A stretch of DNA of 64,000 bases from Schmidtea polychroa (GCA_044892525.1 CM097886.1:93186001-93250000), one strand, 5' to 3'. Positions 715 through 57,560 are shown, numbered from the stretch's first letter. A program made the numbers and translations. The notes: generated by a model from the letters alone, not told the origin.

Positions 715-1725
715 TTTGGACTATAGTTTATTGTCTTTCTTTGGAAAACACGTTAATTCTATAACTTCTAAGCCCTATTCTGTAATATTTATTTAATATG
801 AATATGGTGATAGGTAGACCCTCATCATCCAACACAACAATAACATATTGAGTAAAACAATGTACGCCGCATCACAAATTGAGTGTAAGTAAATTTAAAT
901 GGTATTGTAGAGAACTCGCTATCTGCTTTCTCAACTTTACTGGTTCCTATATATCTACTGAGTATGAAATAAACAAAAGACGGTTGTTTTCAAATATATA
1001 TTTATAATAAAAGATTTGCCAAAAACTTAAATCAATTTCTTGCTATTCGATTCAAAATTTCCAGTAACTGCAATAGAATTGTGTAGGCAAATTATGTATG
1101 TGTGAATGTTATATTATCCTTGCTGTGTTGCGTGCAGTAGTTAGACTTTTTTGTTGTATCCTTCTTATTTTTTAATCTAACGAGGATTCACCTTCTTAGA
1201 TATTAAAAGAGTTGTTAGTTACGAAAATAAGGGTTATATTTAGTTGTTAAGTAAATTATGGTGTAACATTAAGTAATAAATAATAATTAGGTAAATTAAG
1301 GATAAGTAAATTAAAGTTAAAAATTTCAAATATGTAAATTTAGGTTCAAAATTTTAAATTAAGTAATCAATGGTTCAAATTTTAAATTAAAGTTAAATAA
1401 GTAATAATTAATAAAGTAATAATTAATAAAGTATTAATTAATAAAGTAATAATAAAGTAATAATTTTTAAACAAGTAAAGTAATGTAATAAGTAAATTAA
1501 AGTAAGATTTTTAAATTTATTAACAAAAAGTTAGAATAATAATCAATGTTTGAGAAATAAAAATTTAAAATGAAAGTTTTTATGAAATAAATTTTAAAGT
1601 CAATTTTTAATGTAAATTTTAATGGAATAATTTTTTAAGTTAATTTGTATGAAATATTGTTTTAAGATTATTTTAAATACAAATTTCAATGAAATATTTT
1701 TCAATGTCAAATGAAAATTTTAATG

Positions 1726-1760
<35 letters not shown>

Positions 1761-1800
1761 TTCAAAATATAATATTAATATTAATAAAAATAATAATAAT

Positions 1801-1847
<47 letters not shown>

Positions 1848-2468
1848 TAATCATAATAATTCAACAGTTACCAACAATCGGTTACTAAATATTTTTAACT
1901 AGGTGCTAACAAATAACTATTTATTGAATGCAATTTCTACTTTGCAATAATAAGTCAGTAGTTATCATTTAAAAGAAGAATGTTTTGTAAATTAGAATTC
2001 ATTACTCTTTCATTGTAATTTAAATTATCCTCAATTCCACGTGGTGTTTTAAAGTGGTTGAGTTGACAGTTATTCATTTTTTGATGAAAATCAACATTTT
2101 TGTTAAATTTAGACATTTTGAAAAGGTTTTTCTACTGATTGTAATTAAAATTATTTTTGAAGACAAATAAAAAAAATTAATTTGAAAAAGACATTTCATA
2201 AAATACAATGAAGAATATTTAGTTGGTTGTAAGTAGTTAGTTGTAAGTATCTGGTTGTTTGAGTTATTTAGTACATGGTATCATGTTGTAAGTATTTGGT
2301 ACTTATTTATTAGCACCTAGTTAAAAATATTTAGTAACCGATTGTTGGTAACTGTTGAATTATTATTATTTTTATTATTATTATTATAATTATTTTTATT
2401 AATATTATTTTTTGAATATTATTATTATTATTATAATTATCTTTATTAATATTAATATTATTTTTTAA

Positions 2469-2499
<31 letters not shown>

Positions 2500-5035
2500 C
2501 CATTAAAATTTTCATTAAAAATTATTTTTGAAAATTATTTCATTAAAATTTCCATAAAAAATTAACTTAAAAATTTATTCCATTTAAAATTCCATTAAAA
2601 CTAAGCTTAAAAAATATTCCATTAAAATTAACATTGAAAAATGACTTTAAAAATTATTTCATAAAAATTTTCATTTTAAATTTTTATTTCTCAAATATTG
2701 ATTATTATTCTAACTTTTTGTTAATAAATTTTAAAATCTTACTTTAATTTACTCATTACATTACTTTACTTATTTAAAAATTATTACTTTAATTTACTTA
2801 TTTAACTTTAATTTAAAATTTGAACCATTGATTACCTAATTTAAAATTTTGAACCATAAATTTATATATTTGAAATTTTTAACTTTAATTTACTTATCCT
2901 TTATTTACCTAATTATCATTTATTACTTAATGTTACACCATAATTTACTTAACAACTAAATATAACCCTTATTTTCATATTTAACCAATAATTTCATGTG
3001 GTCATCTGGTCCTAAGTACTTGGTATCTAGTTGACAGTGCTTAGTACTAGGTACCTAGTTGCTGCTTGTTTTTGGTTGTTAGTACTTGGTATCTAAGTTA
3101 GTATCTAATTTGGTATCGTAAGTTACTGGTAGATGATACTAAGTTGTTGGTATCTGATTGTTGGTTTGTTGTTAAATTATTATTATTAAATATAATTATT
3201 AAAATTTGTATTTGAAAAATATTTCATAAAAATAAAATTATCTTAAAAGATTATTCCATAAAAATTTTCAATAAAAATTATTTAAAAAAATTTTATTTCT
3301 CAGGAGCTGTCGATTATTCAAACTTTTTGTTAATAAATTTTAAAATCTTACTTTAATTTAATTATTTAAAAATTAATACTTTAATTTACTTATTTAACTT
3401 TAATTTAAAATTTTTGACCATTGATTACTTAATTTTAAAAATTTGGACCTTAATTAACTTTAATTTAATTTTTGGAACCTTAATTTACCTTTTTTAACCA
3501 TAATTTACTTTAATTTAAAATTTTGAACCTTAAATAACTTATCTAGACCATAATTTACTTTAATTTTAAAATTGGGACCATAATTAACTCATTGATTACT
3601 TTAATTCAATTATTAGACCCATAATTTACTTTAATTTAAAATTTCGACCTTAATTTACTTATTTGAGCCCATTGATAACTTTAAATGAAATATTTAGACC
3701 TTAATTATCTTTTATTAAAAAATTTAAACCTTAATTTACTTATTGAGACCATAATTTACTTTAATTTTAAAATTTAGACCATAATTAATTTATTTGAATC
3801 CATTGATTACTTTAATTTAATTATTAGACCCATAATTTGCTGTAATTCATTTTTTAGACCATATTTTAATTTAATTTAAAAATCTGAGCCCACAATTTAC
3901 TGTAATTCATTTTTTAGACCATATTTTAATTTAATTTAAAAATCTGAGCCAATAATTTGCTATAATTAATTTTTTAGACCCTTAATTTACTTTAATTCAT
4001 AAATTTACCATGCTTTTTTATTGAAGACCACCTTTTTCTATTGAAAATCCCAGGACCAAGGAGACCCACCTTAATTTACTTGGGAAAATCCTTGGCTTTT
4101 TTATTGAAGACCGCCTTTTTCTATTGAAAATATCCTGAGACCTTAAATTACCATGGTTTTTTTAGTGGTAATTCAAATTTGTATTGAAAATCCCAGGACA
4201 ATGGAGACTCCTCACTATAGTCTGAAAAATTCCATGCTTTTTTAGTGTAAACAGATTTTTGTATTGAAAATCCCATGACCGTGTGATTGACGTTATCTGA
4301 TAATTAAATCATTGCCATTNNNNNNNNNNNNNNNNNNNNNNNNNNNNNNNNNNNNNNNNNNNNNNNNNNNNNNNNNNNNNNNNNNNNNNNNNNNNNNNNN
4401 NNNNNNNNNNNNNNNNNNNNNNNNNNNNNNNNNNNNNNNNNNNNNNNNNNNNNNNNNNNNNNNNNNNNNNNNNNNNNNNNNNNNNNNNNNNNNNNNNNNN
4501 NNNNNNNNNNNNNNNNNNNNNNNNNNNNNNNNNNNNNNNNNNNNNNNNNNNNNNNNNNNNNNNNNNNNNNNNNNNNNNNNNNNNATAATTGTTTCAGCCA
4601 ATTGAAAATTTAAAGCCCAAAAGTATTGATAAAACAAAATAATAAAAATAATCGGTATAAACATTGTATTTATTTAAGATCCTCAAATTTATTATTTGAC
4701 AATTATAAACATTGTGACAAAAATATTAACATTTCATCTCCTAGCAACGGTTTCCAAAGCTGTATTGTTTAGCATTTAATAGGGAAATATCAGTGAGAAA
4801 TATCACAAATTTATCCAGGAAGGTTTGGCATTGTTGCTTATTGTAAGTTTTATTTGATTGTTTGTTTTATTGTATTCGAAATGGTCTTATTTAGTTGCGT
4901 AACTGCTGTTGCAAGGGTTTGCATGACAAGCGCAATTTGCTGCTGTCTAAATATCATCAAGCAATTCCAAATCATTTCTTTATTCCCATATCTGGTCTCT
5001 AGAATTTATGAAGCCAAGGAATCACTGGAGTGAAG
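715..5035 (+). repeat. Left arm of a giant inverted repeat; AT-rich subrepeats, (AAT)n tracts and an N-gap
   Basis: tttggactatag at 715 is the reverse complement of ctatagtccaaa ending at 13794. The match runs inward to ...cactggagtgaag at 5035, pairing with cttcactccagtg at 9027. Confidence 0.9.
1223..2976. repeat. Nested foldback (long internal inverted repeat) inside the left arm; counterpart at about 11255-13287
   Basis: gaaaataagggttatatttagttgttaag at 1223 pairs with cttaacaactaaatataacccttattttc ending at 2976. An inner pair at 1878-1917 / 2305-2345 flanks a unique loop. Confidence 0.8.
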
Positions 5036-5230
5036 GTTTTCTGTGAGTTCATTATTTGATAAATATTCATATTCCGTATATAATTTAACTATTCATATGC
5101 CGATAACTCCATATGTCGTCTAATAAATCATGAATTTCATCGGGAATATTCATATCAACCTCCAATTTATATCCATATGGTAAATTCTCTAGGTTTGATG
5201 ATTTACACTCTTCTAGAATGGTGTCCTAAT

Positions 5231-6584
5231 CAGTGGCGGATTTAGATTTTGGTGCTTGGGGGCGAGGAAAATTTTCAGGGGGCGCCACAAATTATGAAGA
5301 TGGTACTACTTATTTTCGCGAGTATTGATTGAATACTAATATTATTAAAAAGCATTATATTCAGTAAATTTATTCTAGTAAATTTATTGATGTAACAAAC
5401 ATACAAGTTTTTTTATTATTTAAATTGCTTCCTGCGTGATTTCATTGAAGCAAAACGATTTATAGTCGATTTAAAATCAATGTTCTCAGCCAGTTCGCGT
5501 TCTATTGAAATTAATGCTAATCCAGACAGACGTTCGTTTGTCATTGTTGATCGCAAATAATTTTTGATGATTTTCAGTCTACTGAAACTTCTTTCAGCAG
5601 TAGCAGATGTAACAGGAAGAGTCAAGTATATTTTAAAAAGAATTGCCAAATTGGGAAGTCCTGGTGCCATCTGTTTTTCAACCAAGAAAGGCAGCACCTC
5701 TTTAAGTTGTAGTTCACAAGATAGTAATGGGCGTATTGATGCATACACGTATTTGAAAGTATCATTCTAGGATTGCTTCTTCAATATTAATATCATTTTT
5801 GTAAATGTCGCATAAATTTTGAAAAGATTCTTTATTTTCTTCTGATATTTGTGATGGATCAAGACAGGAGAATAAAGCAACAGTGTTATGAAAATCATTA
5901 AAACGTTCATCTAGTTGTGTTACAAGTGTATCCAAGACAGTGAAATACGTTTCACATTTGAAGCGTGTAGTTGGATCATCAACCCTTTCATATCTGTTAA
6001 GTTCACCTGCCATGCGTTTCCTTTTTGCAACTCGCTTTTCTTTAAATTCTGTTTCAACATCTAATGAGGAACAATTTTTGATAATAAATGATTTTACAGC
6101 AACATTTAGACTTTCAAAAGCTTTATCACTTCTCATATCAGCAAACTTATTTCTGGCAACATAAATCAATTGTTTTGCAAAAGCAATATCAATGTCCTTT
6201 GATTGCAAATAGTTTGATAACACAAAGATATTATCTAACAGCTTTTATAGAAATAGCATCAGAAAAACAAAAGTATTTTGTTATCAAAATAGATAGTCCC
6301 ATAGCTTCTGCTCTGACACTTCCTTTGTGTTCTTTTGATTCCCCAATATTTATATCTTCTAGAGTAGATATAATAACGGAGAATGATCCAACAACTGCAT
6401 CAACTGCATGCTTTCGGCTTGCCCATCTTGTATCAGAAAGTCGTTTTAGAGTATCTACTGTCGATTCATATCGAGACTTTTGATGTTCTTCGAGAATATG
6501 TAGTCGTGGTAGACTTGATGTAAGGAAACTATACAACTTTTCTGTTGTACCAAAAAACAACTGAACATCATTGTTAAGAGACAT
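5231..6584 (-). mobile_element. 5'-truncated hAT transposon (ZMYM1/Tip100-like transposase pseudogene) with its 3' terminus
   Basis: SDTRWASR motif and C-terminal dimerisation motif LTLPVTSATAERSFSRLKIIKNYLRSTMTNERLSGLALISIE, interrupted by a stop and a frameshift. Terminal CAGTGGCGGATTT at 5231. Confidence 0.9.
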
Positions 6585-7244
6585 TGCTTCAATATTATTT
6601 TTGGGGGATTCTGCATATTTATATGTTTTAGGATGTTTTATACAATTTTACACTTTTATATACTAAACTTTGTTCAAATTATTGTCAAAATAAAAATAGA
6701 TTTTTTATGGATAAATGGCTCACATCAAAGAATTGTTAAATTAATAAATTAATGTAAATTTATTAAAAATATAATAAAATTGAAATAAAATAACTTACCA
6801 TTTCCTGAATCTCTTTTCATATTTAAAATAAAATGTCTTGGGAAATATTTGTAAATTTGAATTTAAAGTAAATAATAAAATAAAACACAATTTAAAAATA
6901 AAATGAAAAGATTGATTTTAACTTTATAAATAATCAATTTATGTTTTTATTTTAATTCAATTGAATATTATTTTAATATTTCAATAGTAACGCAATAATT
7001 TGTTTGTCAAAAAAGTCCAAATTGATAATTATTATAGTTAGATTTATGTACAAACACTTTACAAGCTTAAAAACTTCAAACAGTCGCTCTTCACTGGAGC
7101 TATGTAATATTATTAATATGATGCAGCATAACAGCTCGAGTTGCTTAAATCCAGTTGAACTTTGTCTGTGTACAAAACTGTGTACAAAAATGTACAAAAC
7201 TGTAATATTAGAAAAAATTCATAAAATTATCTTTGGGGGGGCGA

Positions 7245-7390
7245 CTCGCAAATAAATTGGAATATTTCACAAGAAGTTCAAAAATTTCATCATCAAATAT
7301 CTTTTCAAAAAATATTGTAGGTGATTCATTATTATGCGGACCTTGCATTTCTTTCCACTGCTGTGATGATCTACTAATATCTTTCATTGA
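7245..7390 (-). pseudogene. piggyBac (PGBD-like) transposase fragment
   Basis: Minus strand reads ESPTIFFEKIFDDEIFELLVKYSNLFA, matching the piggyBac N-terminal motif SPxxxFxxFFDxExxxxIVxxTNxYA. Confidence 0.55.
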
Positions 7391-8411
7391 CTATTTATAT
7401 TGGCGCCTTTTACTCACTATGGCATTTCTTAACGGATGCGAAACTGTTGGACTGAAATGACGAAATCTTTAAGAATACCAAATTCCAATTCAATACAAAA
7501 ACATTTTATTGCAACAATAATTTTCTTATTCAAGAACAATATTAATCCTTGACAATAATTATTTCGGTGTTTTATTTTATTCTTGGTGTTTTTATCTTTA
7601 GTTTATACAAATAACGTTTTTTATTTATTCTTGATAATGATTACTCTATTCTGGTGTCATTTAGATGTAAATAACACTTATATTTTATGTTGGTGTTTTT
7701 TTATTTGTTTTTAATTTTTTTTTACTTTTTAGGTACATATAAATAAACATAAAAATAATTAAAGTATTTTGTAATTAATATTTCTGATCATATTTCTAGG
7801 CAATTTCACCCATAAGCTTGTCTAAAATAATTATTTTAGGCAAGTGAAAAAGCAAATGAAAAGTAAATATATATATTTTAACAGGCGAAAAAAATATCAA
7901 AATACGCGCGACTATCAAATATAAATTAGGGATGATATATTTTAATAAAATCTTTTTTTAGGTTTTGTTATGAGAATTGTATGAGAATAAAAAAACAATG
8001 TATATTTTTAGTAAAGTTTTTTCAAATCCAAGACGATACAACTATGCTCGCGCTAGCTATTCCAATAGTTTGTCGGTCTTTTTTTGCACAAAAAGGTCAT
8101 AGACAAGTGCTGGTTTAACAGGTCCAGTTAAATGCATCGTTGTGCTCGGCTACGCGCGCAAACTACTCTCACTTCTTCGTATTTGACACTTTTACTTGTG
8201 TTAGTTTCAAGTTAATAGTTTTGAAGTGCAATAGTTTCTTTATTTTATATGTAATAAAACGTATAATAATCATTTAAATATTTTCCACTACAATAAGTAC
8301 TATTATTAAAATTATTAAATATTATTAAATTAAAATCAAACCGACTACTGCTGTAGATACACTAGCAGTACGTGATCCAATTTTTTTTATAAAAATATTT
8401 ATATTCTTCTC

Positions 8412-8733
8412 ACAATATTTGCTACTTTGCCGGTATCATATTTAAGAAATACCATGGATGAAAAGGGTTAAATGGTTTGGCTTTGTTATATATTCATCAA
8501 GACATTAAAATAAATCCGGATGAAATACTTTCTGAATTAATGAAAGGACAATGACGAATTAATATTATATTGTAATATATTCTATGTAATATACATTGTT
8601 AATAATTAATAATAAATTTGTAAATTATCTTAAAATATTTTTCTATTTTTCCGTGTCAACTTTTAACATTCCTCGATGAATTGCAATAATTAATAATTTT
8701 GCCCCCGAAGCAGAAATCCTGGCTACGTCTCTG
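8412..8733 (+). mobile_element. Second hAT remnant: internally deleted dimerisation domain plus right terminal repeat
   Basis: Reads TIFATLPVS/YLRNTMDEK then, after a frameshift, RLNGLALLYIHQDIKINPDEIL. End gaaatcctggctacgtctctg is the reverse complement of a CAGxxxCGTAGCCAGGATTT-type hAT terminus. Confidence 0.7.
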
Positions 8734-9026
8734 TTTGTAAGAATATTCAATATTTTATATTATCATGATTAAAAACCATTGCCATAGAACTGGGTCAAGT
8801 ATATAGCACGAACCATTGCTATAGGGGTGGGTCAAGTATATAACAAGTTTCATTTAGAAGTGCATTCAAATGTAAAAAATCAAAAAAAAGCATTATATAA
8901 TCACCACAAAAATATTAAAGTATAAATGAGAAATACCCTCATTAAATGAAAATATAAAAACTAACCGCACCATGAGATGATTAGGAGAGAGATTGAGAAA
9001 CCTTACAGACATTGTGCATTGAGATT

Positions 9027-11729
9027 CTTCACTCCAGTGATTCCTTGGCTTCATAAATTCTAGAGAGCAGATATGGGAATAAAGAAATGATTTGGAATTG
9101 CTTGATGATATTTAGACAGCAGCAAATTGCGCTTGTCATGCAAACCCTTGCAACAGCAGTTACGCAACTAAATAAGACCATTTCGAATACAATAAAACAA
9201 ACAATCAAATAAAACTTACAATAAGCAACAATGCCAAACCTTCCTGGATAAATTTGTGATATTTCTCACTGATATTTCCCTATTAAATGCTAAACAATAC
9301 AGCTTTGGAAACCGTTGCTAGGAGATGAAATGTTAATATTTTTGTCACAATGTTTATAATTGTCAAATAATAAATTTGAGGATCTTAAATAAATACAATG
9401 TTTATACCGATTATTTTTATTATTTTGTTTTATCGATACTTTTGGGCTTTAAATTTTCAATTGGCTGAAACAATTATNNNNNNNNNNNNNNNNNNNNNNN
9501 NNNNNNNNNNNNNNNNNNNNNNNNNNNNNNNNNNNNNNNNNNNNNNNNNNNNNNNNNNNNNNNNNNNNNNNNNNNNNNNNNNNNNNNNNNNNNNNNNNNN
9601 NNNNNNNNNNNNNNNNNNNNNNNNNNNNNNNNNNNNNNNNNNNNNNNNNNNNNNNNNNNNNNNNNNNNNNNNNNNNNNNNNNNNNNNNNNNNNNNNNNNN
9701 NNNNNNNNNNNNNNNNNNNNNNNNNNNNNNNNNNNNNNNNNNNNNNNNNNNNNNNNNNNNNNNNNNNNNNNNNNNNNNNNNNNNNNNNNNNNNNNNNNNN
9801 NNNNNNNNNNNNNNNNNNNNNNNAATGGCAATGATTTAATTATCAGATAACGTCAATCACAGGTCATGGGATTTTCAATACAAAAATCTGTTTACACTAA
9901 AAAAGCATGGAATTTTTCAGACTATAGTGAGGAGTCTCCATTGTCCTGGGATTTTCAATACAAATTTGAATTACCACTAAAAAAACCATGGTAATTTAAG
10001 GTCTCAGGATATTTTCAATAGAAAAAGGCGGTCTTCAATAAAAAAGCCAAGGATTTTCCCAAGTAAATTAAGGTGGGTCTCCTTGGTCCTGGGATTTTCA
10101 ATAGGAAAAGGTGGTCTTCAATAAAAAAGCATGGTAAATTTATGAATTAAAGTAAATTAAGGGTCTAAAAAATGAATTATAGCAAATTATTGGCTCAGAT
10201 TTTTAAATTAAATTAAAATATGGTCTAAAAAATGAATTACAGTAAATTGTGGGCTCAGATTTTTAAATTAAATTAAAATATGGTCTAAAAATGAATTACA
10301 GCAAATTATGGGTCTAATAATTAAATTAAAGTAATCAATGGATTCAAATAAATTAATTATGGTCTAAATTTTAAAATTAAAGTAAATTATGGTCTCAATA
10401 AGTAAATTAAGGTTTAAATTTTTTAATTAAAGATAATTAAGGTCTAAATATTTCATTTAAAGTTATCAATGGGCTCAAATAAGTAAATTAAGGTCGAAAT
10501 TTTAAATTAAAGTAAATTATGGGTCTAATAATTGAATTAAAGTAATCAATGAGTTAATTATGGTCCCAATTTTAAAATTAAAGTAAATTATGGTCTAGAT
10601 AAGTTAATTAAGGTTCAAAATTTTAAATTAAAGTAAATTATGGTTAAAAAAGGTAAATTAAGGTTCCAAAAATTAAATTAAAGTTAATTAAGGTCCAAAT
10701 TTTTAAAATTAAGTAATCAATGGTCAAAAATTTTAAATTCAAGTTAAATAAGTAAATTAAAGTATTAATTTTTAAATAATTAAATTAAAGTAAGATTTTA
10801 AAATTTATTAACAAAAAGTTTGAATAATCGACAGCTCCTGAGAAATAAAATTTTTTTAAATAATTTTTATTGAAAATTTTTATGGAATAATCTTTTAAGA
10901 TAATTTAATTTTTATGAAATATTTTTCAAATACAAATTTTAATAATTATATTTAATAATAATAATTTAACAACAAACCAACAATCAGATACCAAGTACAA
11001 GATACCAACAACTTAGTATCATCTACCAGTAACTTACGATACCAAATTAGATACCAACTTAGATACCAAGTACTAACAACCAAAAACAAGCAGCAACTAG
11101 GTACCAGATACCCAGTACTTACAACCGACAACAACCAGGTACCAAGCATTATCAACTAAGTACTAACAACCAAGTTCGAAATACCTAGTACTAAGCACTG
11201 TCAACTAGATACCAAGTACTTAGGCCAGATGACCACATGAAATTATTGGTTAAATATGAAAATAAGGGTTATATTTAGTTGTTAAGTAAATTATGGTGTA
11301 ACATTAAGTAATAAATGATAATTAGGTAAATTAAAGAGAAGTAAATTAAAGTTAAAAATTTCAAATATATAAATTTATGGTTCAAAATTTTAAATTAGGT
11401 AATCAATGGTTCAAATTTTAAATTAAAGTTAAATACGTAAATTAAAGTAATAATTTTTAAATAAGTAAAGTAATGTAATGAGTAAATTAAAGTAAGATTT
11501 TAAAATTTATTAACAAAAAGTTAGAATAATAATCAATATTTGAGAAATAAAAATTTAAAATTAAAATTTTTATGAAATAATTTTTAAAGTCATTTTTCAA
11601 TGTAAATTTTAATGGAATATTTTTTAAGCTTAGTTTTAATGGAATTTTAAAAAATTTTTTAAGTTAATTTTTTATGAAAATTTTAATGAAATAATTTTCA
11701 AAAATAATTTTTAATGAAAATTTTAATGG

Positions 11730-11805
<76 letters not shown>

Positions 11806-12658
11806 TAAAATGATGATTGCTTGGTAGCAGCATTTATTATTTAAAACAATAAAATGATAATTTAAGCCTTTTGCTGCAAATAATGTATTTAATGAAAGAA
11901 TTTTCGACTATACGATTGACAAGGACTATCGTATAGTCGAAAATTCTTTTATTAAATACATTATTTGCAGCAAAAGGCTTANNNNNNNNNNNNNNNNNNN
12001 NNNNNNNNNNNNNNNNNNNNNNNNNNNNNNNNNNNNNNNNNNNNNNNNNNNNNNNNNNNNNNNNNNNNNNNNNNNNNNNNNNNNNNNNNNNNNNNNNNNN
12101 NNNNNNNNNNNNNNNNNNNNNNNNNNNNNNNNNNNNNNNNNNNNNNNNNNNNNNNNNNNNNNAATCGGTTACTAAATATTTTTAACTAGGTGCTAACAAA
12201 TAAGTACCAAATACTTACAACATGATACCATGTACTAAATAACTCAAACAACCAGATACTTACAACTAACTACTTACAACCAACTAAATATTCTTCATTG
12301 TATTTTATGAAATGTCTTTTTCAAATTAATTTTTTTTATTTGTCTTCAAAAATAATTTTAATTACAATCAGTAGAAAAACCTTTTCAAAATGTCTAAATT
12401 TAACAAAAATGTTGATTTTCATCAAAAAATGAATAACTGTCAACTCAACCACTTTAAAACACCACGTGGAATTTAGGATAATTTAAATTACAATGAAAGA
12501 GTAATGAATTCTAATTTACAAAACATTCTTCTTTTAAATGATAACTACTGACTTATTATTGCAAAGTAGAAATTGCATTCAATAAATAGTTATTTGTTAG
12601 CACCTAGTTAAAAATATTTAGTAACCGATTGTTGGTAACTGTTGAATTATTATGATTA

Positions 12659-12705
<47 letters not shown>

Positions 12706-12733
12706 TTTATTAATATTAATATTATATTTTGAA

Positions 12734-12783
<50 letters not shown>

Positions 12784-13794
12784 CATTAAAATTTTCATTT
12801 GACATTGAAAAATATTTCATTGAAATTTGTATTTAAAATAATCTTAAAACAATATTTCATACAAATTTACTTAAAAAATTATTCCATTAAAATTTGCATT
12901 AAAAATTGACTTTAAAATTTATTTCATAAAAACTTTCATTTTAAATTTTTATTTCTCAAACATTGATTATTATTCTAACTTTTTGTTAATAAATTTAAAA
13001 ATCTTACTTTAATTTACTTATTACATTACTTTACTTGTTTAAAAATTATTACTTTATTATTACTTTATTAATTAATACTTTATTAATTATTACTTTATTA
13101 ATTATTACTTATTTAACTTTAATTTAAAATTTGAACCATTGATTACTTAATTTAAAATTTTGAACCTAAATTTACATATTTGAAATTTTTAACTTTAATT
13201 TACTTATCCTTAATTTACCTAATTATTATTTATTACTTAATGTTACACCATAATTTACTTAACAACTAAATATAACCCTTATTTTCATAACTAACAACTC
13301 TTTTAATATCTAAGAAGGTGAATCCTCGTTAGATTAAAAAATAAGAAGGATACAACAAAAAAGTCTAACTACTGCACGCAACACAGCAAGGATAATATAA
13401 CATTCACACATACATAATTTGCCTACACAATTCTATTGCAGTTACTGGAAATTTTGAATCGAATAGCAAGAAATTGATTTAAGTTTTTGGCAAATCTTTT
13501 ATTATAAATATATATTTGAAAACAACCGTCTTTTGTTTATTTCATACTCAGTAGATATATAGGAACCAGTAAAGTTGAGAAAGCAGATAGCGAGTTCTCT
13601 ACAATACCATTTAAATTTTCTTACACTCAATTTGTGATGCGGCGTACATTGTTTTACTCAATATGTTATTGTTGTGTTGGATGATGAGGGTCTACCTATC
13701 ACCATATTCATATTAAATAAATATTACAGAATAGGGCTTAGAAGTTATAGAATTAACGTGTTTTCCAAAGAAAGACAATAAACTATAGTCCAAA
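9027..13794 (-). repeat. Right arm of the giant inverted repeat
   Basis: Reverse complement of 715-5035 with scattered substitutions and indels. The N-gap at 9478-9823 has the same flanks as the gap at 4320-4584. Confidence 0.9.
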
Positions 13795-14520
13795 GTAGTA
13801 GGATTGGGGCCATCCAGGCCAGGGGCCCTCCCGGCCACATATACCCCCTCCCCCCCCCGGGAAAAAATTTTTTTTTTAAATAAAAGGTCAAGGTCATTTA
13901 TTTTTTTTTTTTAATTTTTTGTTTTAATTAATTGGCCGGGATGGCCCCTACTTTTTGTCATCCCAAAAATTAATGTTCCCGCCAACGGATTTTATTGGAC
14001 GATACCTCATCTTAAAGCTCAGTCCAAGACCTTTCGAATGAGCTATAGGTATCCTATATATCTTTAATAGTTTTAATGTTATTAACAATTGATGACCACC
14101 ATCTTTTCAACGTTAAATTATTATTATTTTCCAAAATATTATTAATTGGCCGGGAGGGCCCCTACTTTTTTTCATCCCAAAAATTAATGTTCCCATTATC
14201 CGAATTTATTGCTCGATATCTTATTTTGAAGCTTAGTGCAAGACCTTTCGAATGAGCTATTGAAGGTATCATCATCATTAACATCGGCAAAGTTATTAAC
14301 GTTTTCCCGAGACCATTTTCAAGGTCATTTATTTTTCAAAATATTATTAAGTGATCTGGCGGGCTCACACTTTTTTTCATCCCAAAAATTAATGTTCCCA
14401 TTATCCGAATTTATTAACCGATACCTCATCTTAAAGCTCAGTCCAAGACCTTTCGAATGAGCCATAGAAGGTATCATCATCATTATTATTAACAAAGAGA
14501 ATGAGTCACCCAATGACTCA
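13794..14520 (+). mobile_element. Non-autonomous repeat element beginning AGTAGTAGGAT with internal ~200-bp subrepeats
   Basis: GC-rich terminus, a ccccccggg run, and repeated tcaaggtca / aaaattaatgttccc / gacctttcgaatgag blocks. Same architecture as 31730-32290 on the minus strand. Confidence 0.5.
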
Positions 14521-14523
14521 CCC

Positions 14524-14690
14524 AACGATGCCTAATATTTTTAGAACGATGCCTAATATTTTTAGAATGATTACGTCATAATTTTAGAACGATGTCTATT
14601 ATTTTTAGAACGATGCCTAATATTTTTAGAACGATTACGTCATACTTTTAGAACGATGCCTAATATTTTAAGAACGATGCCTAATATTTA
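14524..14690 (+). repeat. Minisatellite with a ~21-bp unit (aacgatgcctaatatttttag)
   Basis: About seven head-to-tail units with minor variants and no unique spacers. Confidence 0.85.
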
Positions 14691-14785
14691 ATATAAAATG
14701 TCTTTTTTCTTTTTATGTATATTATGGGTATTATGTGTTTACTAATATTTCTGTAAAATTAACCATTCTCCCTTCCCTACCGAGC

Positions 14786-16435
14786 ATGGGAGGGTGCTGC
14801 TATGGGCCCCAGCACTCTTTTAAAGGGGGAAACCAAGGGAACAGGATAAAGAACAGAGCTAAGTCAAGGGTGAGGGCGAGCGAGGTAATGGGTTTTGAAT
14901 TGCGATGGGAAAGTATAAATCAAATATTTGTCAAAACTCTTACTGGTAAGACAATTACTCTTGACGTTGAATTGAATGGCACGATTGAAAAGGTAAAAGG
15001 AAAAATTCAGGACAAAGAAGGAATTCCGGTAAATTATCAAAGGTTAGTCTACGCAGGGAAGCAATTAGAAAATAAAAGAATATTGAATGATTATAGCATA
15101 CAAGTAGGTTCGACACTTCATTTGTCACTCAGGCTGTGCGGTGGCAATGACGAAGAGATTTTAGAAGAAGAATTGTGGAAAAAGAGAATGAAAAAAGGAA
15201 AATTAACGAGATTTAGAAACAAGATTCTGAATGATATAAAGGGTAAGGATGTTAGCAAATGGTTGGAGGAATATGAAGATCAAAAGGAGAGTCTAGATGA
15301 AGAATTAAGAGATCTAAGAACGATCAGTGAAAAATTGCAAAGATTGGACATCACTGCAATCTTAGATAAAGACCTGGAGGAGATCGAGGAAAAACATCAA
15401 ATAATTGGGGCATTGATGGAAAGAAAAGCAAATCAATCTTTTATGGAAAAGAAGGAAAAGGTGAATGATGATACCATCAAGAAGAATAATGCAGTGCATA
15501 AAAGAAAACTGGAAAGTCTACAGAAAATTACAATACCTGTCTTTGAAGGCAAGATGAAAGAGTACGAACCATGGCAAGCAGCTTTTACGGCGTGTGTTGA
15601 CGAAGCGGAAGGTGATGAGGTTGAAAAGATGTTTCACCTGCACAAGTACCTTCACGGAGAGCCATTAAAGTTAATTGAAAATCTAGGATATTCGACAGAG
15701 GCTTATCAAATGGCAAAAGAGAAGTTGGATAGGCGATATGGTGGGGATGAAAGGATATATTTATCAATGTTAGAGGAGATGGAACAGTTCAGGCCAATTC
15801 GAGAAGGAGATTTGAAGAATCTAGACTTATTTGTTGGATTATTAGAAACAGTCACCGTGCGATTTAAATCCACTGGGAAAGATTCCGAGTTAAATACTGG
15901 ATATCTTTTTCAAAAGTGTTTGGGCAAGTTAACAACGGATCTTGTGTATAAATGGAGGAAAGAGAAAATAGAAAAGGAATTGCGGGAGACGATAGAGAAT
16001 TTGAGAAGATGGATACAACAAGAAGCGGAGATCCTAAGGTCCACTAACGAGGTCGTGTATGGGACTCAACCATGCACCAGGGCTTATGATGGGTCAAGAG
16101 TAGAAGGTGTGTCTGTAGAAAGAGAAAGCTTCAATCCAGGAGGTTGGACGCATTTTACGGGGCAACCAGATGGCAAAGTTAAAAGTGGAACGGTTATACA
16201 GGTGAATAACTCTAATGGCTATAGATCAGAGTGTGTACAATGTGGTGGTCAACATTACCTAGACCAATGTGACAAGTTTAAGCAACTCACAATTTCAGAA
16301 AGGAAAAGAGTCATCGAAGAAAAGAAACTGTGCCGGAATTGCTTCAAAAGAAATCACATGGCCAAGGAATGTCGTAAAGAATCTTTCTGCAAGGTTACCG
16401 GATGTAATCAAAGACACAGCGAATTATTAAATTAA
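14786..16435 (+). CDS. gag: Ubiquitin-Gag fusion protein (ubiquitin domain 14918-15145, DUF1759-like BEL/Pao Gag, C-terminal Cys/His knuckles)
   Basis: [18 protein letters not shown]...[12 protein letters not shown] is about 55/76 identical to ubiquitin by manual alignment. [18 protein letters not shown] and [17 protein letters not shown] match DUF1759 Gag; [27 protein letters not shown] and [10 protein letters not shown] are the knuckles. The ATG at 14786 has a strong Kozak context; the ORF track starts at 14735. Confidence 0.9.
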
Positions 16436-16444
16436 AACGCATCA

Positions 16445-17574
16445 ATGAGGACGGTTCAGAGTTATTTTGCGGTAACTGAAATGTTCAATGACGAGTTACG
16501 GGCATCTCGAGGAATTGAGGACACGCCACTCGACAGGAGTAAGGCATCTAATGAAGAGCAAGGAGCTCAGAGTCATTTAGATGGGCAAATATTCAATTCT
16601 GGAAGAACTAACGAATTAGTTAACGTTATGACAATCACACAAAATGTTCAAGGAAAAATGAATACAGGGGAAAAGCAAGATGAGGCTTGCCGGGCTGGTG
16701 AGATCATAAAATTATCCGACGATAAAATTGTGGAACCGAAGACAACGGAAGTGATGAGTAATTGGGAAAAAGACAAACCAGAATCAGAGGATTTAACGCC
16801 CGAGGCGGCGGTTAATGATATGCAGGTCGACGAATGGGAAGTTATTCGATTAAAAGAAGAACGTGATAATGTAAAAGGGGCAGAAGACTCCAGAGGGGAG
16901 AGGCAAAACAAGGAGACCAGTATGGTATATGGAAATCATGGGAAACTGTACGGGATAATGATCAAGGGGCCAAGGAAGTTTTGGAAAAATTGAACGAATC
17001 ATCGAACAGTTTAAAACAACAAGGATCACTGGAACTCGCTTGCACGCCTCTAAAGATGCACATGAAAGACAAGGTGTCAATTAGGGAATCGAAACACGAA
17101 GCAATCAAAGAACGACTTTGTAGGATGCTTATAAAACCATTAAGTGAAAACTGGTCACTAAATGAAATGCAACAGGGAAAAGGGTGGAATATTGAATTGG
17201 CGAAAAAGGGAGAAAGAATAATGGAGAGATTACACCTAAACAAACTGAACAGAGACAGCTGCTTGGCCGAGTATAGCGATGGTGGGTGGAGAATCCACAA
17301 TGATGTTTCAAAAAAGGTGCGTGGTGCGGCGGCTTATATAATACAAAGATGGGTTTGTGAGGGTTATTGGAGATTGAGCCAAAATGCAGAAAATGGAGGG
17401 CGAAGGGATAAAATGGCGAGGGAAGTGCAAGAAATGAAGGGGAAAAGGGATAAGCTGACACGGGAATGTATCTTCAAATTATGTTGGAGTATAAAAGAAG
17501 AAGGAGAAGCTGATGGGGATTTGAGATTGACACTAAGGTGTCAAGGGGGGGGGGGGGAGGATGGTAAATTATGA
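16445..17574 (+). pseudogene. Degenerate pol-region remnant of the BEL element (ORFs 16445-16993 and 16981-17574)
   Basis: The first ORF is in frame with Gag after a single TAA. The second weakly resembles the BEL pre-RT region ([15 protein letters not shown]...EY). No catalytic motifs are recognisable. Confidence 0.45.
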
Positions 17575-18440
17575 GCTCAATGCGCGTCTGTGTGCGCGTT
17601 GTATTGTGTGATGGGTTTGTGTGCGCACACAGACGCGAGCAATGTCATTTTTGTGTTGGGTTGTTAGTTTATCTCGCGTCTGTGTGCGCTTTCTTTTCTT
17701 TGTTTTTGGCTTGTGTGCGCACACAGACGCGAGCAAGAGGTATGGCAATTTTATTAAGTAGTTTTGTAATTTTTTTTGATTTAGAAGTTAATTAGATTTT
17801 TGAATGTGAATGGATTTAGAGAGTTGTTAATGGTATCGATTTCGGTTTTTTGGAGTTTATGATTTTTCGGATAAAAGATGGCTGCTTTTAATGAAGAAAT
17901 TTATGAATCTGATAACTCAATGGAAATTGGAAATACTACCAACGAAACTGATGGTTCATTTTTTATGATCCCAAGAGATCCTGATAACTTTAATGGTGTT
18001 TTTGGCCAACTAATATTAAATTTATTTGGTGGATGGATTTCCGTTGGTATTCGATGCAATAATTGTGATGTAGTAGCTACACAAAGAAAGGTTCCAGATA
18101 AAATGATTGAGAAGAGTACAGCTACAAGATTGTTTAATATTACTGAAAGTACTGGAGGTGTTATGACTGGTATGATCCCTAATTATCGATCTCAAGTATG
18201 TCGTGCACAAATGGAAGCAGCTCGATTTAGATATAAACATGGATATGAAATGCCTTGTGACATAATATGTCGTTCTATTGCGGATATTAAGCAGCTTTCT
18301 ACCCAATCAACTGAGACGCAACCATTAGGTTGTTCAATGATGGCATTATCTTATGGTATTGAAATGGACAAATTGTTATTATTCAAAACCGGCTCTATGG
18401 ATGAAAATAAAATTATTATTCGTGATCCTGAATTTAAACA
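17562..18440 (+). repeat. 3' LTR of BEL copy A (879 bp)
   Basis: Starts TGGTAAATT right after the PPT and ends AATTTAAACA (imperfect inverted termini). Homologous to 56616-57414 and 59496-60361. Confidence 0.85.
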
Positions 18441-18447
18441 ATTATAG
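17878..18447 (+). CDS. PSMA6: LTR-borne ORF: novel acidic leader fused to a truncated proteasome subunit alpha type-6
   Basis: GGWISVGIR...TQRKVPDKM...LFNITE..G.VMTGM...RSQV.RA..EAA.F.YK.GYEMP.D..C..IADI.Q..TQ..E..PLGCSM aligns with PSMA6 (roughly 55% to the human sequence as I recall it, over ~107 aa; homology 18028-18390). Lacks the N-terminal gate and most of the C-terminal half. The stop codon lies just outside the LTR. Confidence 0.9.
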   Translation: MAAFNEEIYESDNSMEIGNTTNETDGSFFMIPRDPDNFNGVFGQLILNLFGGWISVGIRCNNCDVVATQRKVPDKMIEKSTATRLFNITESTGGVMTGMIPNYRSQVCRAQMEAARFRYKHGYEMPCDIICRSIADIKQLSTQSTETQPLGCSMMALSYGIEMDKLLLFKTGSMDENKIIIRDPEFKQL

Positions 18448-25269: not shown

Positions 25270-26165
25270 AAGAAACTCCGCCTAGAATTGCGTTTCAAGT
25301 TCACCAACGGTATTCAAATTCATCGATTTAACATAGTTCTTCCATTTACTAAAAAATTCTTCAATGGGATTCAATTACGGACTATATGGCGGAAGAAATA
25401 AAATATTGTGTCCATATTCCGCTATAAAATTTTCAACGCTCAAAACCCTGTGGAAAGCCACATTATCCATAATTATCGTATTATTTTCCATGTTCAACTC
25501 TTTCATTTTTCGAAATAGCTCTGTCAAGAATTCAATATCTACATTATAAGTTCGATTTTGTGTCTTATGAAAAACTATTCCGCCCTTAGATATCCCAGCA
25601 CAAACCGAATAGTTTCTAGACCTTATTGCTCTTACCACTTTCCTGGTTGGAGTCTCCAAAAATTTTCTTCCATAATTGAGTGTAAGTGAACAACTCACTC
25701 CCATTTCATCGACAAAAATCGTTTTATCTTCATCAAGTAGAAGATATGCGTTCCCATAATCATATCTCCTAGTTATATTATCAGGACTGTTTCTAGCCTC
25801 AGGGATCAAGCTTACCCGTTTTAAGGAATAATTCAGGCTCTGTAAAGATCTCTCTATCGTTGGCAAAGATACAACTATTCCCTTTTCGGTGTAAATGCGA
25901 CTTTTAAGCGACTTTAAAGTAATAGAAACTTCATTTTCGATTTCATTAACTATGAATGTTTCAACATTTCAGTCAATTTTCCTTGCTTTTGGGACTCTCC
26001 GTTTAATAGATTCGGTTCTTCCAAATCGTCTGTACGTTCGTAAAACACTTCTAATTGTCTCATAGTTCAACTCCAGGGCCGCCGCAATTTTTTGAGGCGA
26101 TTTTCCAGCCTCATGTTTATTTATTATAGATCTTCCTGTTTCATCTGACATTTGCCTTTTCCTGT
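25270..26165 (-). mobile_element. Tc1/IS630-like (DD34E) transposase pseudogene, 5' end replaced by the duplicated hAT block
   Basis: HTH-like ELNYETIRSVLRTYRRFGR, FVDEMG, IMDNVAFH and LPPYSP*LNPIE with 34 residues between D and E. Confidence 0.85.
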
Positions 26166-28279
26166 TTAAGCAACTCGAGTTGTTATGCTGCATCATATTA
26201 ATAATATTACATAGCTCCAGTGAAGAGCGACTGTTTGAAGTTTTTAAGCTTGTAAAGTGTTTGTACATAAATCCTACCATAATAATTGTCAATTTGGACT
26301 TTTTTGACAAACAAATTATTGCGTTACTATTGAAATATTAAAATAATATTCAATTGAATTAAAATAAAAACATAAATTGATTATTTATAAAGTTAAAATC
26401 AATCTTTTCATTTTATTTTTAAATTGTGTTTTATTTTATTATTTACTTTAAATTCAAATTTACAAATATTTCCCAAGACATTTTATTTTAAATATGAAAA
26501 GAGATTCAGGAAATGGTAAGTTATTTTATTTCAATTTATTTATATTTTTAATAAATTTACATTCATTTATTATTTTAACAATTCTTTGATGTGAGCCATT
26601 TATCCATAAAAAATCTATTTTTATTTTGACAATAATTTGAACAAAGTTTAGTATATAAAAGTGTAAAATTGTATAAAACATCCTAAAACATATAAATATG
26701 CAGAATCCCTAAAAAATAATATTGAAGCAATGTCTCTTAACAATGATGTTCAGTTGTTTTTTGGTACAACAGAAAAGTTGTATAGTTTCCTTACATCAAG
26801 TCAACCACGACTACATATTCTCGAAGAACATCAGAAGTCTCGATATGAATCGACAGTAGATACTCTAAAACGACTTTCTGATACAAGATGGGCAAGCCGA
26901 AAACATGCAGTGATGCAGTTGTTGGATCATTCTCCGCTATTATATCTACTCTAGAAGATATAAATATTGGGGAATCAAAAGAACACAAAGGAAGTGTCAG
27001 AGCAGAAGCTATGGGACTATCTATTTTGATAACAAAATACTCTTGTTTTTCTGATGCTATTTCTATAAAAGCTGTTAGATAATATCTTTGTGTTATCAAA
27101 CTATTTGCAACGAAAGGACATTGATATTGCTTTTGCAAAACAATTGATTTATGTTGCCAGAAATAAGTTTGCTGATATGAGAAGTGATAAAGCTTTTGAA
27201 AGTCTAAATGTTGCTGTAAAATCATTTATTATCAAAAATTGTTCCTCATTAGATGTTGAAACAGAATTTAAAGAAAAGCGAGTTGCAAAAAGGAAACGCA
27301 TGGCAGGTGAACTTAACAGATATGAAAGGGTTGATGATCCAACTACACGCTTCAAATGTGAAACGTATTTCACTGTCTTGGATACACTTGTAACACAACT
27401 AGATGAACGTTTTAATGATTTTCATAACACTGTTGCTTTATTCTCCTGTCTTGATCCATCACAAATATCAGAAGAAAATAAAGAATCTTTTCAAAATTTA
27501 TGCGACATTTACAAAAATGATATTAATATTGAAGAAGCAATCCTAGAATGATACTTTCAAATACGTGTATGCATCAATACGCCCATTACTATCTTGTGAA
27601 CTACAACTTAAAGAGGTGCTGCCTTTCTTGGTTGAAAAACAGATGGCACCAGGACTTCCCAATTTGGCAATTCTTTTTAAAATATACTTGACTCTTCCTG
27701 TTACATCTGCTACTGCTGAAAGAAGTTTCAGTAGACTGAAAATCATCAAAAATTATTTGCGATCAACAATGACAAACGAACGTCTGTCTGGATTAGCATT
27801 AATTTCAATAGAACGCGAACTGGCTGAGAACATTGATTTTAAATCGACTATAAATCGTTTTGCTTCAATGAAATCACGCAGGAAGCAATTTAAATAATAA
27901 AAAAACTTGTATGTTTGTTACATCAATAAATTTACTAGAATAAATTTACTGAATATAATGCTTTTTAATAATATTAGTATTCAATCAATACTCGCGAAAA
28001 TAAGTAGTACCATCTTCATAATTTGTGGCGCCCCCTGAAAATTTTCCTCGCCCCCAAGCACCAAAATCTAAATCCGCCACTGATTAGGACACCATTCTAG
28101 AAGAGTGTAAATCATCAAACCTAGAGAATTTACCATATGGATATAAATTGGAGGTTGATATGAATATTCCCGATGAAATTCATGATTTATTAGACGACAT
28201 ATGGAGTTATCGGCATATGAATAGTTAAATTATATATGGAATATGAATATTTATCAAATAATGAACTCACAGAAAACCT
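26164..28279 (+). repeat. Inverted 2.1-kb duplicate of 5033-7149 containing the hAT transposase pseudogene (26730-27897; terminus about 28082)
   Basis: Near-identical reverse complement with the same stop and frameshift. Junctions at ttgcttaaa and agaaaacct. Confidence 0.92.
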
Positions 28280-32465: not shown

Positions 32466-33275
32466 TTATTTATATGGCGGAAGAAATAAAATATTGTGTC
32501 CATATTCCGCTATAAAATTTTCAACGCTCAAAACCCTGTGTAAAGCCACATTATCCATAATTATCGTATTATTTTCCATGTTCAACTCTTTCATTTTTCG
32601 AAATAGCTCTGTCAAGAATTCAATATCTCCATTATAAGTTCGATTTTGTGTCTTATGAAAAACTATTCCGCCCTTAGATATCCCGGCACAAACCGAATAG
32701 TTTCTAGACCTTATTGCTCTTACCACTTTCCTGGTTGGAGTCTCCAAAAATTTTCTTCCATAATTGAGTGTAAGTGAACAACTCACTCCCATTTCATCGA
32801 CAAAAATCGTTTTATCTTCATCAAGTAGAAGATATGCGTTCCCATAATCATATCTCCTAGTTATATTATCAGGACTGTTTCTAGCCTCAGGGATCAAGCT
32901 TACCCGTTTTAAGGAATAATTCAGGCTCTTTAAAGATCTCTCTATCGTTGGCAAAGATACAACTATTCCCTTTTCGGTGTAAATGCGACTTTTAAGCGAC
33001 TTTAAAGTAATAGAAACTTCATTTTCGATTTCATTAACTATGAATGTTTCAACATTTCAATCAATTTTCCTTGCTTTTGGGACTCTCCGTTTAATAGATT
33101 CGGTTCTTCCAAATCGTCTGTACGTTCGTAAAACACTTCTAATTGTCTCATAGTTCAACTCCAGGGCCGCCGCAATTTCTTGAGGCGATTTTCCAGCCTC
33201 ATGTTTATTTATTATAGATCTTCCTGTTTCATCTGACATTTGCCTTTTCCTGTTATTCATAGGGCTTTTACTCAA
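32466..33275 (-). mobile_element. Second Tc1/IS630-like transposase copy, 3'-truncated, between (TA)n arrays
   Basis: Near-identical to 25375-26165, keeps the original N-terminus (MSKSPMNNRKRQ) and breaks off at LPPY. Confidence 0.85.
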
Positions 33276-37994: not shown

Positions 37995-39048
37995 TGTTAG
38001 GTTCGATGGGTATGTATTCGAACTAACACAAAAACGTTTCACTGACTCCAATTAATTTATAACGCGTGTAGGTAAATAAAATAACGAATATGATTTAAAT
38101 ATTTATTAACAATAAATAAGTAGTAACACAATTGTTTATATTACACAATTAATCACGCTGCTTTCTAAAGAACAGAAAACGGTTATACAAACCGCCCTAA
38201 AGAGTATTACTAAGAATCAAGGCTGGCCCTAAATGCGCCAACAGCCCGATATAGATGAACGGGAAAGAGATAGGGAGGTTTACCAAATTTTAACGCGATA
38301 GTGTCAACCAAGAAAATGGTTAACACTTTAAATTTTATTTGAAACGAAACAGCTACAAAAAATATGTGCTGACGTTGCAATCCCCTTTTATATTAACTTA
38401 AATAAATGAATATAATTATATGTATATATTACAAAGCAAAATTACTAACTAATTAGAAATCCAAAAGAGATAAAACCACAGATGTGTTATTCGAGCTTAA
38501 TTTCTTGTGGATAGAATTTTCTCTCTTGTTTCGATTATAGCTCCAACAAAGATTGGAGATGGGTTCTTGTAGTTTTGAATAAATATTGTAATTTTGAATA
38601 AATAATTCCAAATCCCGAATTGATAAAATTAATTTTCGATCGATGTGAAATTCTAATGTCTACTGTTAAATCTCCAATTAGATAGGAGATGTAAAATTGC
38701 AAAATTAGTTTCGTTAAATGTCAAATGACACAAATTTGTTTCTAATCAAATCGATTGCTTCTTTAACTACTACGTCTCAAATGTTTCTTTCGGTTCTACG
38801 TGACTTAACTTTCTCTCCCCTCAATCTAATTTTTCAACTAGTATTTATATAAATTTATTTATTTTAAATCTATTAATAGTAATTATTTAATTACTATTTT
38901 TATTATATATTTTTAAACAATTACTATTTTTGTTACCAATCTATTTTTAGTAATTATTTATTACTATTTATATTTTAATTCCAATTTTAGTAATTAATTA
39001 TTATTTAATTTCAAAACTTTTGATTCCGGTTCCTACTGAACCCCAACA
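37995..39048 (-). repeat. 3' LTR of the Gypsy element (1054 bp)
   Basis: TGTTGGGG...CCTAACA. 38631-39048 matches 51412-51829 with two substitutions. Confidence 0.88.
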
Positions 39049-39376
39049 TGTCTTCCCCCTAACAAGATTTTAGTCCCGAAAATTAAAGCGGTAAAGATAA
39101 GACAATTNNNNNNNNNNNNNNNNNNNNNNNNNNNNNNNNNNNNNNNNNNNNNNNNNNNNNNNNNNNNNNNNNNNNNNNNNNNNNNNNNNNNNNNNNNNNN
39201 NNNNNNNNNNNNNNNNNNNNNNNNNNNNNNNNNNNNNNNNNNNNNAATTAATCAAATATTGTTCATAAAATTAATGTTTGTCAATTTGAATAACTGGATT
39301 GGATTGAATTGTCGAAGGTGCTTTGATTGAGGACGTATAGCAAATTGCTAGGTCCATTGAACACATAGCCGAATTG

Positions 39377-41539: not shown

Positions 41540-41669
41540 GAGTCTTATTATAAAAGATCTACATATGCTGAATTTTAATGCTACCTGGAGCTCTACGTAA
41601 ATATAGATTTTAAGATATATATAAATATTTATATATGATTTTTCCCCCGGGGAAGTCTGTAATTGTCAT

Positions 41670-45500: not shown

Positions 45501-46130
45501 CCAGATTCTGCCCACTCTGGTATCTGGATATAAGTAAAATGGTTTAATGTCCAGATTGGCTACCCTGATTGGTATTCTACCATTGACTATTAAACCTACG
45601 CTATGCGTAACTGGTATATTGTATTTCTCCGAAAATCTTTCGTCTGGTTCAAATGCAACTTCACCTTCCCAATTATTGCTTGTAGCTACAAAGCATACCG
45701 TTTCTGCTCTGGGTGGTATGATAGTTGTATGATCTATATAAGCTGTATCATCGTTGTAAATTTTTCTCTTTTTACCTCGTGCTCGGATTAACAATCCAGA
45801 TGCACAATCGAATACTACTCCTCGTAGTCTTTTTAGGATGTCCATACCCAATAGACATTCGGCTGGGAGCATTCTCATCACTATGATGTCGTGATGGAGC
45901 TCCTGGTCACATAGCTTAATCTGTCATGATAATGACCCTATTACGTTTAATGAGGATCCGTTTGCTCCTGTTAATTTTACTCCTGCCGGTTTTAGCGACT
46001 GCAGTTCATGATGGTTTAACAATTTAGCTTCAATTATGGTACCATCTGCTCCTGAGTCTATCACCGCATTAACTGTATGTCGGTTCACTCTTATTTTTAT
46101 CATTGGCTTTTTATCCAAATTCACTGGGTT
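42570..46130 (-). pseudogene. pol: Gypsy pol: protease, RT, RNase H, integrase, disrupted by stops and single-base frameshifts
   Basis: AVIDSGA (46058), MPFGL, VYIDD, TDAS/IAYASR, an H-H-C-C zinc finger, MDVLGP, TDRGADF and DGLVERFN. Confidence 0.95.
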
Positions 46131-51351: not shown

Positions 51352-51411
51352 ATGTTCATTAGCATTCTGTTTTCGATGATAAAATTGTTGTCTAAATATT
51401 CTTGTTGTCTA

Positions 51412-57432: not shown

Positions 57433-57560
57433 CCGGCTAGCCAGCCGGAACAAGGTAATTAATGATTATAAAATGTCTTTTTTGTGTTTATGTATATTAT
57501 GGGTATTATGTGTTTACTAATATTTCTGTAAAATTAACCATTCTCCCTTCCCTACCGAGC

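Follow-up and report, generated by a model that had tools for sequence, protein, structure and literature searches.

A BEL/Pao-type LTR element of Schmidtea polychroa encodes a Gag protein headed by a complete ubiquitin, and the same fusion recurs at the same junction in distant relatives of this Gag. The ubiquitin-Gag fusion is apparently a conserved and undescribed trait of a mobile-element lineage, as judged by comparison of these sequences. Host deubiquitinases probably cleave ubiquitin-Gag co-translationally and release a native-like Gag, a reading to which we assign a probability of about 0.6. The features of the window, by which we mean the whole 64,000-nt stretch of DNA analysed, are collected in Table 1.

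Table 1. Ubiquitin-Gag element copies A and B, their parts, and captured host fragments in the window.
Feature	Position	Strand	Evidence
Copy A, gag-only non-autonomous BEL/Pao-type LTR element, 5'-truncated	14692-18440	+	Self-comparison, LTR alignment, tblastn
Ubiquitin-Gag ORF of copy A, 566 codons stop to stop, no internal stop or frameshift	14735-16435	+	ORF translation, Pfam
Ubiquitin domain, 76 codons, LRLCGG end followed by Asn	14918-15145	+	Translation, Pfam, PDB, canonical alignment, AlphaFold2, Foldseek
Gag proper: long helical hairpin, DUF1759 helical domain, disordered linker, zinc knuckles	15146-16435	+	Pfam, phmmer, AlphaFold2
Internal region at the usual place of pol, two collinear cytoplasmic dynein 1 heavy chain-like pieces	16445-17574	+	PDB sequence searches
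Polypurine-tract-like G/A run of copy A, 5' of the 3' LTR	17545-17564	+	Alignment
3' LTR of copy A, ending in ...AAACA	17629-18440	+	Bounds set by homology to the 5' LTR of copy B
ORF in the LTR, intronless fragment of proteasome subunit alpha type-6 (residues 35-143 of 246)	17878-18447	+	Pfam, PDB
Copy B, both LTRs, one internal deletion of ~0.85 kb relative to copy A	56616-60361	+	Self-comparison, alignment
5' LTR of copy B, 98.9% identical to its own 3' LTR	56616-57414	+	Self-comparison, alignment
Primer-binding-site-like sequence, TGG start, directly after the terminal CA of the LTR	57415-57432	+	Alignment
Ubiquitin-Gag ORF of copy B, broken once	57462-59342	+	Translation
Polypurine-tract-like run of copy B	59476-59498	+	Alignment
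3' LTR of copy B, with proteasome alpha-6 fragment	59563-60361	+	Self-comparison, alignment

The ubiquitin domain is free of stops over its whole length and matched positions 1-71 of the 72-position Pfam ubiquitin profile (PF00240) with E = 2.2e-23. Ubiquitin chains in the PDB matched residues 2-76 with E values near 1e-29, and the best of these sequence matches include several natural ubiquitin fusion-precursor chains. When aligned with a canonical reference, one unit of an animal polyubiquitin returned by database search, 55 of 76 residues were identical (72%), which agrees with the figure of about 72% given earlier in a sequence-only reading of this DNA. Lysines K6, K11, K27, K29, K33 and K48 are retained, K63 is replaced by Val, and the recognition patch carries Val in place of I44 and Ser in place of V70; the same reading had named these retentions and replacements correctly. 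In addition, R74 in the tail is Cys, and position 1 is Asn (AAT) rather than Met. The domain shares its reading frame with a DUF1759 match (PF03564, E = 1.5e-11) and zinc knuckles, so that the earlier claim of an in-frame fusion to a BEL/Pao Gag with an intact diglycine is also borne out.

An AlphaFold2 model of the ubiquitin-Gag protein (mean pLDDT 86, from an alignment of 75 sequences) places a predicted β-grasp ubiquitin domain (pLDDT ~90) first, followed by the junction, the long helical hairpin, the helical DUF1759 domain, the disordered linker and the zinc knuckles. The junction that holds GG|N is predicted as four non-helical residues, after which the first Gag helix begins. In a Foldseek search with the predicted domain, the top PDB matches were ubiquitin, with target-normalised TM-scores of 0.80-0.94. 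The closest matches to model residues 11-86 were 5oxi and 5oxh (rmsd 1.1-1.4 Å), ubiquitin mutants described as ‘C-terminally retracted’, a likeness that may be a by-product of how the model joins the tail to the first Gag helix.

We searched 1.84 billion representative proteins by phmmer with Gag alone, leaving out the ubiquitin, and obtained 9172 Gag homologues. Among the best 150 of these, six carry a ubiquitin directly N-terminal to Gag (P0121, P0122, P0161, P0211, P0235 and P0196). The gene call for P0196 is clipped, and the DNA of its contig (L006) encodes a full 76-residue ubiquitin; another of the best 150 (P0153, on contig L005) has just an 8-residue remnant of the ubiquitin tail, KLKGG|S, before Gag. 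The ubiquitin-bearing relatives, one of them a UniParc entry and the others encoded on short metagenome contigs, are 27-46% identical to the window Gag and hence represent separate lineages. The named Gag relatives without ubiquitin come from the jellyfish Rhopilema esculentum and the clam Mya arenaria. P0121 (contig L003) runs past Gag into the BEL/Pao peptidase region, where the DUF1758 match is weak (E = 0.008), and the contig of another Gag homologue encodes a Pao peptidase, an integrase and DUF5641; these Pao pol domains on homologue contigs place the family in BEL/Pao. A word-indexed search with the whole ubiquitin-Gag protein was swamped by polyubiquitins. A search with the Gag-only region, and a five-sequence Gag profile, returned nothing new, probably because E/K-rich words dominated, and Gag queries run against metagenome and viral contigs gave no relatives. 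Ten ORFs of the window, looked up by exact sequence, had no recorded match.

The junction itself is shared. In all members, the Gag part starts right after GG with an acidic stretch, which is followed by a basic KKR...LTR.RN motif. Close relatives without ubiquitin start at the homologous position with Met and an acidic stretch, and in L006 the junction is GG|M; the ubiquitin was thus joined to Gag at the start codon of Gag itself. Across eight junctions, the residue after GG is Ser in four, Asn in two, Gly in one and Met in one, and never Pro. Asn follows the ubiquitin tail in the window copy and in P0122, its closest relative among the best 150 of the 9172 homologues. Integral ubiquitin-like domains usually lack a GG end, whereas processed precursors keep it. 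Deubiquitinases cut linear ubiquitin-X fusions unless X is proline, and an intact GG before a residue other than proline normally results in quick cleavage.

Residue conservation was counted over six members available at the DNA level, including the window copy. The tail positions L71, L73, G75 and G76 are invariant (6/6), as are Q2, F4, K11, T12, K27 and E34. The recognition patch is looser: I44 is kept in two of the six (Val or Leu in the rest), H68 in three, V70 in one and L8 in five. Of the six members read as DNA, five keep K48 and three keep K63. Tail changes include R74 to Tyr and R72 to Asn in L001, and P0122 has Glu at position 75. None of seven domains (these six as DNA and P0122 as protein) contains a stop, and the family ubiquitins are 50-80% identical to the canonical sequence. 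Synonymous sites are saturated (mean ~0.81), and we therefore used raw proportions and the contrast with Gag instead of a corrected dN/dS. By this measure, the non-synonymous difference is 0.32 in ubiquitin and 0.49 in Gag, with ubiquitin lower in 15 of 15 pairs. The refuting condition set in the sequence-only reading, that the fusion exists at this locus alone and evolves neutrally, holds only in part: the fusion is present in distant lineages and constrained there, whereas the two copies in the window, described below, do drift neutrally.

Several derived residues are held in common, with S20N and L67I each found in four members and E64G, T9S and K6R in three each; together with the common junction, they favour a single capture of ubiquitin. 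Every family ubiquitin is nearer to the canonical sequence than to its siblings, and independent captures would likewise leave each ubiquitin nearest to canonical. In a Gag tree, which is weak because it was built by quick neighbour-joining from saturated distances, the window copy, P0121 and P0161 cluster and P0211 falls apart from them. Given this placement of P0211, a second origin of the ubiquitin, or losses, are possible.

The sequence 5' of the ubiquitin differs wholly between members and, in L001, includes a fragment of HSP90; an unrelated leader fits a part of the protein that would be discarded. Taken together, the invariant tail, the absence of Pro after GG, the fusion at the Gag start and the unrelated leader are what we would expect of a processed precursor, not of an integral domain. 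We propose that a BEL/Pao-type lineage captured a host ubiquitin coding unit once and joined it exactly at the start of gag. The translation product would then be a linear precursor of the order (variable leader)-ubiquitin-GG|Gag, and host deubiquitinases would sever it behind Gly76 while translation is under way or immediately afterwards. The cut would free Gag with a defined, native-like N-terminus, and the released ubiquitin-like moiety would take along whatever had been translated upstream. The element might gain a better yield or folding of Gag, as in ubiquitin-ribosomal protein fusions, or a Gag N-terminus that is independent of a leader prone to pick up host sequence. The Cys (window) or Tyr (L001) in place of R74, and the Asn in place of R72 (L001), could slow cutting by some deubiquitinases.

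Because position 1 of the window ubiquitin is Asn, translation must begin 5' of the domain. The likely start in copy A is an in-frame ATG at either 14888 or 14786, 10 or 44 codons before the domain. Met1 of ubiquitin is replaced in six of seven members. The first codon is AAT in the window copy, ATT, ATA, ATT and TCT in four relatives, and ATG in L002 only; the non-ATG first codons sit at 14918 in the window, 727 in L001, 79 in L003, 381 in L004 and 208 in L006. In L003 and L006, a stop precedes the ubiquitin by a few codons, and no in-frame ATG lies upstream. Such members may start at a near-cognate codon, receive a spliced or trans-spliced leader, or be dead copies. A more speculative extension of the cleavage model, which we put forward tentatively, is that the ubiquitin serves as a host-operated ‘self-removing adaptor’ that turns variable leader starts into one exact Gag N-terminus and co-delivers a variant ubiquitin. 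The start of translation may then vary within a leader that keeps gaining host sequence, and may even lie at non-AUG codons, and the co-delivered variant (K63 lost, tail altered) could itself enter conjugation. In this role, ubiquitin would do for a retroelement what 2A peptides and leader proteases do for RNA viruses.

Ubiquitin could instead stay attached and act in cis as a signal on Gag, recruiting ESCRT-type sorting for particle release, or binding to the proteasome or to shuttle factors. Artificial fusions of ubiquitin to retroviral Gag reportedly stand in for late-budding motifs, and PTAP, PPxY and YPxL are all absent from the ubiquitin-bearing Gags. However, the ubiquitin-less relatives lack these motifs as well, so that their absence does not discriminate. 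In favour of such a signal, five of the six members retain L8 and residue 44 stays hydrophobic; against it, H68 and V70 are poorly conserved, whereas the cleavage tail is invariant. An attached ubiquitin must also escape the fast cutting that an intact GG before a residue other than proline normally brings, and unrelated leaders, with a piece of HSP90 in L001, would be odd in a mature protein. We therefore regard a lasting cis signal as unlikely.

If cleavage does occur, the residue that it exposes could act as a timer that makes Gag short-lived. Asn, a tertiary destabilising residue of the N-end rule, would be exposed in the window copy and in P0122, but the other members would expose Ser (four members), Gly or Met, none of which is an Arg/N-degron residue. 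The proposal in the sequence-only reading that Asn tunes Gag stability consequently does not extend to the family, and we give a degron timer little weight; an N-degron based on Asn would at best be a sub-lineage feature on top of the cleavage mechanism.

In the element in the window, LTRs, a primer-binding-site-like sequence, a polypurine-tract-like run and a DUF1759 Gag with zinc knuckles are present, and the Pao-type peptidase, reverse transcriptase, RNase H and integrase are absent. No remnant of pol was found 3' of gag by tblastn with ~40 long Gag-Pol relatives or by Pfam. Copy A has no 5' LTR and no primer-binding site. The LTRs of copy B measure 799 bp each and end in CA, with a CA|TGG junction at the 5' LTR, whose 5' edge probably lacks ~57 bp; LTR homology begins about 65 nt past the purine run. 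The internal deletion, which takes away the end of gag, is the one break in the copy B frame, and the copy B ubiquitin domain (57693-57920) is intact. No target-site duplication was found for the element in the window, and a tRNA scan of the window found none, with no tRNA matched to the primer-binding-like site. In a self-comparison, copies A and B, which are 99% identical, shared more than 5 kb of 3' flank. They therefore go back to one insertion that was doubled by segmental duplication (or by duplication in the assembly) rather than to two transpositions. Over their shared reading frame, they differ by 11 bases, two synonymous and nine non-synonymous, as expected of neutral drift with no constraint on the window copies. 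These features identify the window element as a gag-only LTR element that is young and non-autonomous, and the LTRs, the primer-binding-like site and the polypurine-like tract led us to reject the alternative of a domesticated host gene.

Ubiquitin is not the only host sequence in this element or its relatives. The proteasome alpha-6 fragment (Pfam Proteasome, E = 5.2e-22; PDB alpha type-6, E = 1.9e-35) makes up ~60% of each LTR, where it forms an open frame of 160-190 codons that reaches the LTR end. It is found likewise inside both LTRs of copy B, and a 13-bp indel sets copy A apart from both of them. The dynein 1 heavy chain pieces between gag and the 3' LTR correspond to about residues 1244-1302 and 1375-1447 and lie in two different frames (E = 1.5e-6 and 5.2e-6). 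The region that contains them had no Pfam match, and we interpret it, from the PDB sequence matches, as a captured fragment of host mRNA. On contig L001 (P0161), the HSP90 fragment (~505-703; Pfam E = 1.1e-11) shares an open frame with the ubiquitin and lies nine codons 5' of it. On contig L005 (P0153; 272-3322), CCCH fingers replace the CCHC knuckles, and a CFAP58 coiled-coil fragment lies near the end. The idea that the element collects components from the ubiquitin-proteasome system as a theme is weakened by the dynein heavy chain, HSP90 and CFAP58 fragments, and a capture of abundant mRNAs would explain the assortment better.

Such a record of capture raises the question of whether the ubiquitin is simply one more host mRNA fragment without function. 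The proteasome and dynein pieces in the window element, the HSP90 piece in L001 and the CFAP58 piece and CCCH fingers in L005 all lend themselves to this view, as do the loss of nearly the whole ubiquitin in L005 and the neutral drift of copies A and B. Unlike the other fragments, however, the ubiquitin is complete, in frame and free of stops. It meets Gag at the same junction in the window copy and in six distant relatives among the best 150 of the 9172 homologues, and it evolves more slowly than Gag in every one of 15 pairs, with its LxLxGG tail invariant. We consider a functionless passenger improbable. Most improbable of all is the suggestion of the sequence-only reading that host deubiquitinases replace a missing protease of the element: the window copies do lack a protease, but they lack all of pol, as non-autonomous derivatives do, the ubiquitin-bearing P0121 on L003 extends beyond Gag into the peptidase region of BEL/Pao (the weak DUF1758 match above), so that the lack of a protease is no design feature of members with ubiquitin, and a cut after ubiquitin performs none of the cuts of a retroelement protease.

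Cleavage of ubiquitin-Gag by the host would have close parallels. Natural ubiquitin fusion precursors (polyubiquitin and the fusions to eL40 and eS31) are processed by host deubiquitinases, and their ubiquitin helps the partner to be produced. They share with the family described here a complete, GG-ending ubiquitin placed head-to-tail with its partner and no Pro next to it. In contrast, the partner here is a retroelement capsid protein, the ubiquitins are 50-80% identical to canonical whereas those of the precursors are near-invariant, and the domain usually follows a leader instead of starting at its own Met1. In cytopathic pestiviruses, host ubiquitin has recombined into the polyprotein, and host hydrolases make the N-terminus of the downstream viral protein. 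Those insertions are sporadic recombinants of RNA viruses, whereas the fusion to Gag is a heritable and diversified trait of an LTR-retrotransposon lineage. Baculovirus ubiquitin genes of the v-ubi type were also captured and are ~70-80% identical to ubiquitin, with the fold and GG end kept. They resemble the present family in having diverged while keeping both, but they are stand-alone genes that are not fused to a structural protein. Among retroelements, other BEL/Pao elements have the DUF1759 Gag, zinc knuckles, LTRs and the primer-binding-like and polypurine-like sequences in common with the window element; the window copies differ in lacking pol and in carrying the additional N-terminal ubiquitin. 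TR-GAG elements and maize Bs1, which are plant LTR elements with gag but no pol or with captured fragments of host genes, are similar to the window element, except that they belong to plants and that the capture here extends into the LTR itself.

Our search of the open-access literature turned up no account of a BEL/Pao family with a ubiquitin-Gag fusion, in keeping with the statement in the sequence-only reading that none was known; the search returned only engineered ubiquitin-Gag constructs and unrelated links between ubiquitin and retroelements. In one engineered construct, ubiquitin was put at the N-terminus of a retroviral Gag, according to the abstract with the aim of enhanced targeting to the proteasome (PMC3914991). 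Such constructs are artificial fusions, whereas the arrangement in the window is natural and conserved.

If cleavage is confirmed, this would be a retrotransposon lineage with a host deubiquitinase cut built into the expression of its Gag, for which we found no natural retroelement precedent in the open-access literature, and natural linear ubiquitin fusions would extend past polyubiquitin and the two ribosomal proteins. These diverged ubiquitins, in which the tail is conserved and the binding surfaces are relaxed, also inform on the purpose of each constraint. Finally, the family is an example of elements that repeatedly capture abundant host mRNAs, here ubiquitin, HSP90, proteasome alpha-6 and dynein.

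The window holds a second LTR element, on the minus strand at 38631-51829, which is 13.2 kb long with 418-bp LTRs that are 99.5% identical. It encodes a CCHC Gag, an RNase H and integrase of Ty3/gypsy type, and a 1062-codon ORF in which a Monjiviricetes-type viral fusion glycoprotein (E = 7.7e-85) is joined to the start of an aspartyl protease. Large, near-identical inverted and direct duplications broken up by N gaps (715-13794; 5034-7149 and 26165-28279; 25383-26166 and 32471-33254) could be real palindromes or assembly artefacts. Tandem repeats at 13927-14690, with units of ~210 bp and then ~22-44 bp, adjoin the truncated 5' end of copy A.
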